A DNA stretch of 64,000 nucleotides, from NCBI GenBank assembly GCA_964106645.2, contig OZ067050.1, one strand, 5' to 3'. The position numbers and the translations under genes were made by a program. Positions 8,757-55,588 of the stretch are shown one piece after another. The DNA is from Podarcis pityusensis (Eukaryota). Within the stretch, counting starts at the first letter, position 1. The number at the start of each line of letters is the position of its first letter. The notes beneath the pieces were generated by a model. That model was not told the origin of the DNA, searched no databases, and saw nothing but the letters and a program-made list of their open reading frames with translations.

Positions 8757-11700
8757 TTACTTAGGACCCAACATATCTTCTGGCTTTACCCACTGATCAA
8801 ATTGTTCTGATGTTAGAAATCCGAGCTTGATAGCAGTTTCTTTTAGTGTCGACCCTTCTTTATGTGCCGTTTTGGCAATCTTTGCCGCCTTGTCATAACC
8901 TAATGTAAAAGTCAGTCAGTTCCATTTATTATGTTTAATGAACAGCCTTTACACACATAATGTAAAAGGAAAAGTCATATGAGATAATTTTTAGATCAAT
9001 GAGAAACCAAACGACGAAGTCACCTGCTTTCTAAACTTAACAGTAACTGCTACTACAGTGGTACCTCTGGTTACGAACTTAATTTGTTCCGGAGGTCCGT
9101 TCTTATCCTGAAACTGTTCTTAACATGAGGCGCCATTAGCGAAAGCGTGCCTCCCGCTGCACGTGCGCCTCCAGCATGCGATTTCCACTTGCATCCCAGG
9201 GCAAAGTTTGCCTCTGGGAGCCACTATTTCTGGGTTAGTGCAGCTCATAACCTGACACGTGCACAACCAGGTACCACTGTACTCTGTGTCCTTGGGAGCA
9301 TGTGGAAGCTGCTCATGAAAATGCAGACAATGAAACCTGTAGCATAATGACATCTACACTGTACACTGAATCCCTAGTGGAAGAGGAGAGAGCCTGAGAC
9401 AGCGTTGCTATTTCAGTGACAGCCCTTTATCTATCAATACATTCATTTGGGCCTCCACTCCCAAATGGAGATTGTCTCTGAGCAGTCAACATCACACCAA
9501 TTACAAAGTACTGTATATTAATGTTGCAGCTACTTCTAAGCAAGAATAGCTGTCATAGCTCAGCAGTGGAGCATCAGCTTCATGCAGGTTCAGGCAGCCA
9601 CTGCCAGTCAGGGTAGCCCATTACTGAACTAGATGGACTGAAGGTCTGACTAGCTATATGGCAGCTTCTCATGTTCAGGCCAGCACGCTGTTATGTTCCT
9701 CTCCTTTTTTGCAATCAGTATCTGGGTGTTAGATTAGAATTCAAATAGTGAAACAGTTGTGTTAACTAAAGCTCTGGGAAGTGTGGCACAATTAATGCTC
9801 TTCCCCCTTTTATTACATTTCTATGTGTAGTCTTTACATTTCCCATGGGACCATAACCTACCCTCCTTCCGTTACAGACGTACCAAGGCCAGCATTCCAG
9901 GTCTCTGGAAATCTGCTCAAGCAGGTAACTAGATTCACTTTAAGCACTTCACATGAGTCATGACTGGCATGTGTTAGACACTTACCTATGTGGGGATTAA
10001 GGGCAGTCACCAGCATGAGCGACTCACTCATTAGTTTGTTGATCCTCTCTGTGTTGGCTTGTATTCCAATCACGCAATTGTCAGTGAAAGAAACAGAGGC
10101 ATCTCCTAAGAGTCGTGCAGAGTGTAGCACATTTTTAATCTAAATGAAATATTAAAATACAATTAAAAATCACAGGTGCTGATTTAGAAGACTAGCTGCT
10201 ATACTACATTTTCACTTTCTGTTCAATAAAAGTCAAGACGGCAATATTTAACCCTTTTAACACAACTGGATATGGAATCTCAATAGCTGATATTTTAAGA
10301 AGCCTATAGTAAAGCAACTGGTTTGTGGTTTTTTTGACAAGGACTCCAGAATTGCAGCTTGACAAAATAATAACCAAGTTTTAAATTTTTATGTCCGTAA
10401 GTTTTTTGGAACAACCCTAGCTCCCAGATCCACAGAGTTGAAAGGAGTTAGGATTGCATGGAAGTGTCCCTCCCATAGCACAGCCATTACTGCAGAAATC
10501 CGCCCCTCCGCCTGTGGAAAGCTCAGTGGGCATGTGCCAGTAGGGATTTCCTCTGGCAGTAGCTGGCATTAGGTTCCAACATGGGAAGTTCTAGGGATGT
10601 GGCAGGGGAGGCTTTGAATTCACTGGATTTAAGACTTGTTCAACAGGAAAGACCCCCTTTCCACATCCATAGGCCTGCGGTCATTTCCACTCATCCACAC
10701 ACTAGAACCAAGGAAGATTGGGAGGGGAGGAAGTCAACAATGCAGGCATGGGGATCCCATGGAAGTAGCCAACATTTCTTTTAAATGGTAAGATAAGGCT
10801 TTCAGGCTAGCCTCTCCTGTAATGCAATGCTAGGGCCCAAAATTAAAATGAGCTCGTGCATAAGATGCGACTCCAGCAAAACTCAATTATCCACTCATTA
10901 CAATTACGAAGCCCCTCTAACCATGCACTAAAATATGACATCTACGTCATGTAATTAGAACTTCAAACGTACAATCATGGGTTTAAAGACGTTCAGCTCA
11001 AAGTGGCCACAGCTGCCTCCTACTGTAACAGCAACATGATTCCCCATCACCTGAGCTGCCACCATGGTTATGGCCTCACACTGAGTAGGATTCACTTTTC
11101 CTGTAAAAAGCAGGGAGGGAGAGAAAAGAAGAGAAGGAAAAGACCTCAAATTACTATCTCTCCAACTTTTAAAAAACCATTCATTTCTTCTCTTAAAGGG
11201 AACTCTTACAAATGAGCTACTAAAGTATTATTTAAAAGATTTAGTACCAAAAAACCCCCAACTCTGGATGTGATCATACAGAACCTGGGGCACATTTATG
11301 TAGATAATAGAACACTGAAGATTCTACTGAAAGCAAATAGCTCCAAATGGCATGGTTTCAAAGGCAGATCTAATTACAGCAATAATTTGAGAAAAATAAT
11401 TTGAGAAAAACAATTACCGTAAGATAAAATACTGTGTGCCTGCCAAATGTAAATCAGTCCTCACTTGAATTCACTAAAAATACAAGCAATTTATGCAACA
11501 TGCAAGTTATGTTAGCAGTCTGCAGCTAGAATAAATTGTTCAAAAATACAAGCCTGATATGGTTCTAAATGTTGGAACATCTGCCAGAATTCTTGAAGAC
11601 ACAATAATATCATCTACTACTCATGAATAATCTGTTACCACAGTTTTTCCAAATGATCTTGATATATAATTTTTTGTGTCAGTACAGATTGCTCCACCCC

Positions 11701-53378: not shown

Positions 53379-55588
53379 ATGAATAATTTAAATGACCCTC
53401 CTAACTGGAACATCCAGCCTAATGCAAGGGATGATGAAGGCCATGGAAGCAAATGGAATTATGCTTTGTTGGTTCCCATGTTGGGGCTGGCTGCCTTCCG
53501 TAAGTGACACTTGAAATAAAATTAGACTTTCTCCTTTTTGCAGTTTGTTGGATGAGTTATCTTGACAGGAATTGGTACAAACTGGACTAGGTGATTTAAT
53601 GTAGCAAGTTTTTAGAAACCTTACATTTTTATGCTGTGAACCGTCCTGAGATCTATGGTTGAAAGACAGTATACAAATTGAATAAATTGTAAAAATAATG
53701 TTTTTTAAAAAACTGCAGTGGGCTTCACCTAATGTGGGATAAAGTCAATCAAAGCCAACATAAACTTAGGAAAAGAAATATGTGTTACTTTTTAAAATAA
53801 AGAGTAAGAGTGATGGCCATACATAGGAAATGTGCAAACCTGGCGTTAGATGTGTTTATTATGGGTAAATAATTTTCTCCTTAAAAGTGTCGTTTTCAAG
53901 TTCTTAATGTAATATTTCCTCTGGTCCAGAAGTATAAAGTGCATATAAAAAGTCAAATCACTATAATTGTTTGTTTGTGTTGTTTTTTTTGGGGGGGGGC
54001 GTTGGTGAGGCTCCAGGAGAGATATATTAAAGTAATGGCTAGAATCCAAAGAATGCTTTGACTAATTCCAGATAAGCAGGGAGTTTGGGCTTTGTGCTTT
54101 TTGCCACTTAAAAAAAAAAAGGTAAAGGACCCCAAGACGGTTAAGTCCAATCAAAGGCGGCTATGGGGTGCGACACTCATCTCACTTTCAGGCGAAGGGA
54201 GCAGGCGTTTGTCTACAGACAGCTTTATGGGTCATGTGGCCAGCAGGACTAAACCGCTTCTGGCCCAAGGGAACACCCTGACGAGTGCCAGAGCTCACAG
54301 ACACACTGTTTAACTTCCCGCCGCAGCAATACCGCTACTAGCTGCTCTTCATATCACATAACAAGACTTTTGAAATTGAGGTGACTTTCAAACACAACAT
54401 GTGCTTTCAGAAGTAATGGGGGTTCCTTTAAATAAATAAGGAAGCCTAGGGTGGCTGTTGGAATGTCATCATAGTATTTATGTCTGCATCTCTATTTCAG
54501 AAAATAATAATACTGTAGTCAAGGGTCTCTTGCTTGCTTTCTCTTTGTTTGCCATGTTGGCAACTTATTTTTAACTGGGGTCATATTCTAAATCTAGCAA
54601 GTGCCAAAACTTTCACCCCACCCATAGGCTCAACCCCCTGCACGTTTATGATGATTTATTAAATTTCTTAGTTGCTTTATCTTGCCCAAGGCAACCCAAA
54701 GCGACTTAAAAACAAAGCCACTTAGATACATTAAAACCACGGAGGGGGAAATGCGTTAAAAACATCCCTGTACTCCCCAGTGGGACTTTGTCAGATCTAG
54801 GCATAATTTAACAGATAGGTATTTTCATTAATGTTGGGGCTATTTTTGGAAGTATTATTAGATATTTTTGTTGCAAAATTTCAGTATTAATCATGAGGTA
54901 TTAATCATGCATTGCAGGTTGGATCTGGTCCAGGGAGTCTCAGAAAGAGATAGAAAGAGAGAGAAAAGATACCTATAGAAAGCTCTCATTAGTACAGAGA
55001 GAACTTGAATCTAAATATCGTGACATAATCACAGAAAACCGCCGCACAGTTGCCCATTTGGAACTGGAACTGGAAAAGGAACGGAACAGGACAGTAAGTT
55101 ACCGTGAAGCCCTTGTCTCTCAGAGCCGTAAACTGGTAGAAGAAAGAAGAACTCTGGAACAAGAACGTACAAAATTAGAACAAGAGAAGCAGATTCTGCA
55201 GCACTCTGGAGCTGCCGGTGCTTTGTATCAGAATTGCCTGGAGAAGGAAGAGCAGTGGCAAAAGAGAGCAACTGCTTTACTAAAAGATTTTGAAGATGCT
55301 CTTACGGAAAGGCAGGACATCTACTGTAGCCTTGTGCTACCAAGACACCGGCGACTGGAAGTGGAGAAGAATTTGCTTATTAGAGCAGCAACTGATCCAG
55401 TTGCTGTGGACCTGGACCTGGAAACTGGCTTAAAAGATATTTTCAGGCATGATACCTATTGCAGTAATTTGCTTAACACCAATAAACGTCAGAATGGAAG
55501 GCTAATGTGGCTCTACCTTCGATACTGGGAATTATCTGCTGAGCTCAAAAAGTTCAAGAGGGTAGAGAAGGTCATGTTGGGAAAGTAG
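53379..55588 (+). CDS. CCDC127: Coiled-coil domain-containing protein 127 (mitochondrial, single N-terminal TM segment), 263 aa, 2 coding exons
   Basis: Coding exons 53379-53499 (acceptor AG at 53369-53370, donor GTAAGT at 53500) and 54918-55588. Total 792 nt. MNNLNDPPNWNIQPN...SKWNYALLVPMLGLAAFRWIWSRESQKEIE...NGRLMWLYLRYWEL. Head-to-head with SDHA, as in human. The non-coding first exon was not located. Confidence 0.93.
54119..54333 (-). mobile_element. 5'-truncated Sauria SINE in CCDC127 intron
   Basis: AAGGTAAAGGACCCC...GGGTCATGTGGCCAGCAGGACTAAACCGCTTCTGG is the reverse complement of the 3' half of the other copies. Confidence 0.75.

Follow-up and report, generated by a model that had tools for sequence, protein, structure and literature searches.

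We analysed a stretch of 64,000 nucleotides from the lizard Podarcis pityusensis (contig OZ067050.1 of assembly GCA_964106645.2), referred to below as the window. It is gapless vertebrate DNA with no run of N, and it carries a block of four genes, CCDC127⇄SDHA→FH→CHMP5, in which CCDC127 is divergent from SDHA and the other three genes follow each other on the minus strand. SDHA encodes the flavoprotein subunit of complex II and FH the mitochondrial fumarate hydratase, a class II fumarase, and the two enzymes catalyse consecutive steps of the tricarboxylic acid (TCA) cycle. A previous interpretation made from the letters alone (the sequence-only reading) had described SDHA and FH as an operon-like pair, arranged in tandem and in pathway order on the minus strand about 6.1 kb apart, and had proposed that the pair could be a metabolic micro-cluster. 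Exon-level homology and start and stop motifs showed that its description of the arrangement, gene coordinates included, was right; its functional proposal is examined below.

Genes were searched in the window exon by exon; the tblastn queries for SDHA and FH were the E. coli K-12 proteins SdhA and FumC, encoded at the annotated loci L001 and L002. SDHA extends from 26652 to 49243 on the minus strand, with its ATG at 49243 in exon 1 and its stop codon at 26652-26654. Minus-strand exons located at 28218-42335 covered residues 2-545 of E. coli SdhA, and the last exon encodes a C-terminus ending in AIRSY, followed by the stop. In a PDB search with one SDHA exon, the mitochondrial SDHA proteins of chicken, pig and human ranked top (E about 1e-29), and fumarate reductases scored 1e-12 or worse. 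The FAD_binding_2 and Succ_DH_flav_C domains were both present in the orthologous genes upstream of FH in skink, gecko and turtle (L003, L005 and L006, see below). The predicted product thus has the architecture of the flavoprotein subunit and is closest to mitochondrial SDHA.

FH occupies positions 8757 to 20585 of the minus strand and comprises 10 coding exons between the ATG at 20585 and the stop codon at 8757-8759. Class II fumarase exons were detected at 8766-14831 with E. coli FumC as a query, and FH exons 2-10 (16062-8760) were 94% identical to skink FH. Exon 1 encodes a presequence that resembles those of other sauropsid FH proteins, and a GT donor follows it. One FH exon searched against PDB gave human mitochondrial FH as the best match (E 1e-38), with aspartases at 1e-13. 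As judged from its predicted product, this gene is a class II, mitochondrial fumarase gene with an N-terminal presequence exon. All checked exons of SDHA and FH were open, and they were 84-100% identical to their orthologues.

The sequence-only reading had correctly named SDHA, FH and CCDC127 but had overlooked CHMP5, which lies on the same strand. This Snf7-family ESCRT-III gene is complete (920 to 6883, minus strand); its ATG is at 6883, 1.9 kb 3' of the FH stop codon, and its last exon is near 920, the 3' limit being approximate. Its C-terminal exon matched CHMP5 chains in PDB (E 3e-16). A long simple-sequence tract, the translation of which is poly-Leu, poly-Tyr or poly-Ile according to the frame, is present at 6364-6648, just 3' of CHMP5 exon 1 and on the border of its CpG island. 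On the other side of the block, the coding exons of CCDC127 (PF28343) were mapped by tblastn to the plus strand at 53379-53501 and 54920-55588, divergently upstream of SDHA as had been proposed, and were 91-100% identical to CCDC127 of Rhineura floridana. A protein homologue search with a CCDC127 exon also gave R. floridana as the best match (92%), followed by agamid, phrynosomatid, anguid and skink proteins (83-85%), with turtles and birds lower; this ranking identifies the source of the window as a lacertoid squamate. In the interval from 55.7 to 64 kb, open stretches were judged by eye only, with no Pfam scan, and nothing was obviously coding.

The SDHA-FH intergenic spacer measures 6,066 bp (20586 to 26651). 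No Pfam match was obtained for the ten longest open reading frames (ORFs) in or beside it, nor for ORFs in the CpG islands, and no Rfam match was found in the window. The claim that no protein-coding gene separates SDHA from FH is consistent with these searches, which are weak evidence and not proof. On the minus strand, three candidate SDHA polyadenylation (polyA) signals of the AATAAA type are located 3' of the SDHA stop codon, at 26332, 25781 and 25085.

CpG islands were called with thresholds of GC content of at least 0.55 and a CpG observed/expected ratio of at least 0.65, in 500-bp windows. By composition, three CpG-island-like stretches were detected, one at the first exon of each tandem gene. 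The first covers CHMP5 exon 1 and its promoter (6501 to 7300). The second covers FH exon 1 and what would be the promoter region of FH itself (19901 to 21200), and the GC content reaches its peak of 0.536 around it, at 20001-22000. The third (48601 to 49700) includes SDHA exon 1 and is the only island between the SDHA ATG and the CCDC127 coding exons. CCDC127 had been said to share the promoter of SDHA; the divergent orientation and the single island agree with this, and because no second island precedes the CCDC127 coding exons it is plausible that the third island acts as a bidirectional SDHA/CCDC127 promoter, although the shared promoter itself is only presumed.

NRF1-like palindromes (GCGCAYGCGC with one mismatch) were present in the FH island (20432) and in the SDHA/CCDC127 island (49291 and 49584), and no exact NRF1 palindrome was found anywhere in the window. 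Such sites belong to the usual trans-acting co-ordination of nuclear genes for mitochondrial proteins, for which linkage is unneeded. Further one-mismatch matches occur at 23498 and at 40509-40517.

We then compared the FH loci of other vertebrates. One FH exon was searched against 1.84 billion proteins; the matches, the majority of which were fragments, included a rattlesnake FH (P0006), from which a word search then named vertebrate FH orthologues. These FH loci were compared in their own assemblies with 10-kb flanks, the exon peptides of the window serving as tblastn queries. The order and strand SDHA→FH→CHMP5 were the same in all five informative sauropsid assemblies, where SDHA terminal exons and CHMP5 exons were verified by tblastn. 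The distances from SDHA stop to FH ATG and from FH stop to CHMP5 start were, respectively, 4.1 and 2.6 kb in the skink Tiliqua scincoides (L003), 6.6 and 4.1 kb in the gecko Heteronotia binoei (L005), 2.9 and 3.7 kb in the green turtle Chelonia mydas (L006), 8.2 and 2.3 kb in the Chinese alligator Alligator sinensis (L009), and 1.5 and 0.4 kb in the hoopoe Upupa epops (L010), compared with 6.1 and 1.9 kb in the window. The SDHA-FH spacer thus ranges from 1.5 to 8.2 kb, a five-fold variation in length. The Snf7-family gene 3' of FH encodes 219 amino acids in four of the five loci and 197 in alligator. In chicken, a selection scan lists CHMP5, FH, SDHA, CCDC127, SLC6A19, SLC6A18 and TERT, among others, at GGA2 85.92-86.41 Mb (PMC10035218, Table 3); the genes listed after CCDC127 are SLC6A19, SLC6A18, TERT and CLPTM1L.

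In conclusion, the adjacency extends beyond this assembly, and the same neighbours, in the same order and orientation, form a micro-synteny block across independent assemblies. The suggestion that the arrangement could be squamate-specific has to be abandoned, as turtle, alligator and birds have it too.

Two gene models met in this comparison are unusual. The rattlesnake model P0006 (Crotalus adamanteus, 399 amino acids, L004:10001-59942) is mis-modelled: its last 125 residues derive from a non-FH open stretch at 49565-49939, and the model leaves out the true FH exon 7 (57038-57250). The first intron of this gene is 33 kb long, compared with 4.4 kb in the window. The alligator FH model P0175 (623 amino acids, L009:10001-38756) carries RT_RNaseH Pfam domains, most likely from an intronic retroelement spliced into the model.

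If SDHA-FH linkage had been selected for, the pair would be expected to be more conserved than its neighbours. FH and CHMP5, which are functionally unrelated, are adjacent in exactly the same species as SDHA and FH (the five loci and chicken), and their spacer (0.4-4.1 kb) is the shorter of the two at every locus, the window included, except in green turtle. SDHA-FH therefore fails this test of selected synteny. The sequence-only reading had itself stated that a pair no more conserved than neighbouring ones would count against it, and this is what was observed.

The operon-like organization was not supported either. First, a separate CpG island marks FH, and candidate polyA signals follow SDHA. 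Second, no blastn match was found between the window spacer and the spacers of skink, gecko, turtle, alligator and hoopoe, and the only matches among these other spacers were in the SDHA 3' untranslated region (turtle-alligator) and in FH exon 1 (skink-gecko). Separate islands, polyA signals after SDHA and the lack of a conserved spacer element leave the idea of an operon, or of co-regulation, without support at the sequence level: nothing points to one promoter and one transcript, and we infer that the two genes are transcribed independently.

Comparison with known systems leads in the same direction. The locus resembles the bacterial TCA operons, such as E. coli sdhCDAB beside sucAB, in having genes of one pathway side by side on one strand; unlike them, it has a 6-kb spacer and a separate CpG island for FH, and it lacks the other SDH subunits. 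In E. coli itself, fumC is outside the sdh operon. Plant and fungal metabolic clusters also bring together non-homologous genes of the same pathway, but they consist of at least three co-expressed genes, and the pathway that these serve is dispensable and lineage-specific (PMC4797310), whereas SDHA-FH is a two-gene housekeeping pair with unrelated flanks. Since SDHA and FH are the only pathway genes of the block, which is bounded by CCDC127 and CHMP5, the locus falls short of the minimum of three adjacent non-homologous pathway genes that defines a metabolic cluster in eukaryotes. The closest likeness is with the conserved micro-synteny blocks described in amniote gene-order surveys (PMC2871058), in which neighbours, order and orientation are kept and transcription units are separate; the block differs from these only in that SDHA and FH catalyse consecutive TCA steps.

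Outgroups were used to determine the direction of change. In platypus, KMO is divergent from FH (KMO⇄FH), as in human. In the teleost Astyanax mexicanus, the next gene downstream of FH lies on the same strand and belongs to the R7 family of RGS genes; its first exon matches RGS7 in PDB (E 1.5e-9). The upstream neighbour of FH in this fish is a homeodomain gene. The human order at 1q43 is RGS7, FH, KMO, OPN3, according to a figure legend (PMC3604173). Neither a called gene nor any exon of SDHA, CHMP5, KMO or RGS7 was present in the 10-kb FH flanks of Xenopus laevis (L007) and Spea (L011), a result that is uninformative and not negative. Matches obtained with tblastx in the amphibian flanks were rejected as low-complexity repeats. 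In X. laevis, FH spans 80 kb, compared with 11-46 kb in the amniotes examined. A tandem repeat in RGS7 intron 1 of Astyanax (L012:38981-40118), about 1.1 kb long and open in three frames (HTCKP-like units), was the source of spurious tblastx matches with another repeat, which lies at about 21.7-22.6 kb of L007 in the Xenopus FH intron.

Because FH-RGS7 is common to the teleost and human, while CHMP5 holds that position in sauropsids, we infer that the SDHA-FH pair is very probably derived and that FH relocated in the sauropsid stem lineage. We stop short of a firmer statement on polarity because the outgroups are few. The move would have occurred at the DNA level, since the introns and the CpG-island promoter of FH are intact.

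The block can also be compared with the human arrangement, in which all four genes have intact orthologues and CCDC127 and SDHA form the same divergent pair. Human CCDC127-SDHA-PDCD6 is at 5p15.33, with the genes from PDCD6 to SLC12A7 lying between SDHA and SLC6A19, and human CHMP5 is at 9p13, head-to-head with BAG1. FH and CHMP5 are both on chromosomes other than that of SDHA, so that the sauropsid block joins pieces of three human chromosomes. In the window the CHMP5 promoter faces the 3' end of FH, as opposed to BAG1 in the human configuration. Chicken CCDC127 adjoins SLC6A19-TERT instead of its human neighbours, which suggests that several breakpoints cluster around the block; compared with the human neighbours, the chicken order also suggests more breakpoints immediately beside CCDC127-SDHA, at either end of this pair.

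Taken together, these results lead us to favour, with a probability of roughly 0.8, the explanation that the SDHA-FH adjacency is an ordinary inherited gene order that followed an old rearrangement and was neutrally retained. Two independent, intact housekeeping genes would lie in tandem inside the four-gene block, each being transcribed from its own promoter. The block would date to the sauropsid stem lineage, because it is common to squamates, turtles, crocodilians and birds. FH would have left an older site beside RGS7, kept in the teleost and in human, with KMO on its other side in mammals, and one or more DNA-level rearrangements would have placed it between SDHA and CHMP5 with its introns and CpG-island promoter retained. 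Slow gene-order change in sauropsids and short spacers would then have been enough to keep the pair together, with no demonstrated functional need.

Three points weigh against this explanation. Selection, too, would be expected to retain two consecutive pathway steps in every main sauropsid group sampled. In the rattlesnake, the 10 kb that precede FH exon 1 contained no SDHA exon, which makes this locus uninformative for snakes. Finally, polarity was deduced from one teleost, one monotreme and the human literature.

The best of the alternatives, which we nevertheless consider improbable, is that of a selected metabolic micro-cluster, in which linkage would be kept by a shared chromatin domain, by shared regulatory elements or by the co-inheritance of alleles. 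It would account for the short spacers (1.5-8.2 kb) and for the tandem arrangement on one strand, in pathway order, in the window and the five assemblies, and for the order in chicken; the one-mismatch NRF1-like sites in both islands also fit, although they are typical of genes for mitochondrial proteins in general. What speaks against it is that the unrelated FH-CHMP5 pair is conserved to the same extent, that the spacer contains no conserved non-coding DNA, that a separate CpG island belongs to each gene, that only two pathway genes are present, and that the same pathway runs with unlinked genes in mammals and in a teleost. A narrower version, in which a two-gene cluster created by the stem-sauropsid rearrangement would have been kept to couple, through a shared domain or read-through, the transcription of the steps that control succinate and fumarate, appears somewhat less probable still.

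On a par with this narrower version, and hence quite unlikely, is the suggestion of the sequence-only reading that the pair may be ancestral and broken in mammals, which would here mean an old vertebrate pair with independent breaks in mammals and in teleosts. The upstream side of FH has been rearranged at least once, its neighbour being KMO in platypus and a homeodomain gene in Astyanax, and the amphibian flanks are uninformative, both of which leave some room for an ancestral pair. However, the FH-RGS7 adjacency of Astyanax and human places FH in a 1q43-like setting before ray-finned fishes and tetrapods diverged, KMO-FH is common to platypus and human, the gene 3' of FH in sauropsids is CHMP5 instead, and at least two independent breaks at one spot would be required, against a single relocation. 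Last, the possibility of an assembly misjoin, or of a duplicated or pseudogenic copy that only this assembly contains, can be discarded with near certainty, because the same order is found in the chicken reference and in five assemblies that were made independently and represent other orders, the window has no N runs, the exons checked in SDHA and FH are open and close to their orthologues, and parts of the spacer are present in contigs from sequencing runs of several related organisms (23 runs found, from ten studies).

Ordinary retention of an old gene order thus remains the explanation that we prefer, and the adjacency behaves like any other conserved neighbourhood. The gene order itself was already known from public bird and reptile annotations and from the published chicken list (PMC10035218). 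Full-text literature searches found no paper that discusses the linkage of SDHA and FH.

The locus is of interest in two respects. It marks a cluster of breakpoints, at the 3' end of SDHA, at either flank of FH and at the 5' end of CHMP5, which is useful for the reconstruction of amniote chromosomes. It also constitutes a natural experiment: SDHA and FH are linked in sauropsids and unlinked in mammals and teleosts, so that one may ask whether linkage affects their co-expression, with FH-CHMP5 and the unlinked SDHB, SDHC and SDHD genes as built-in controls.

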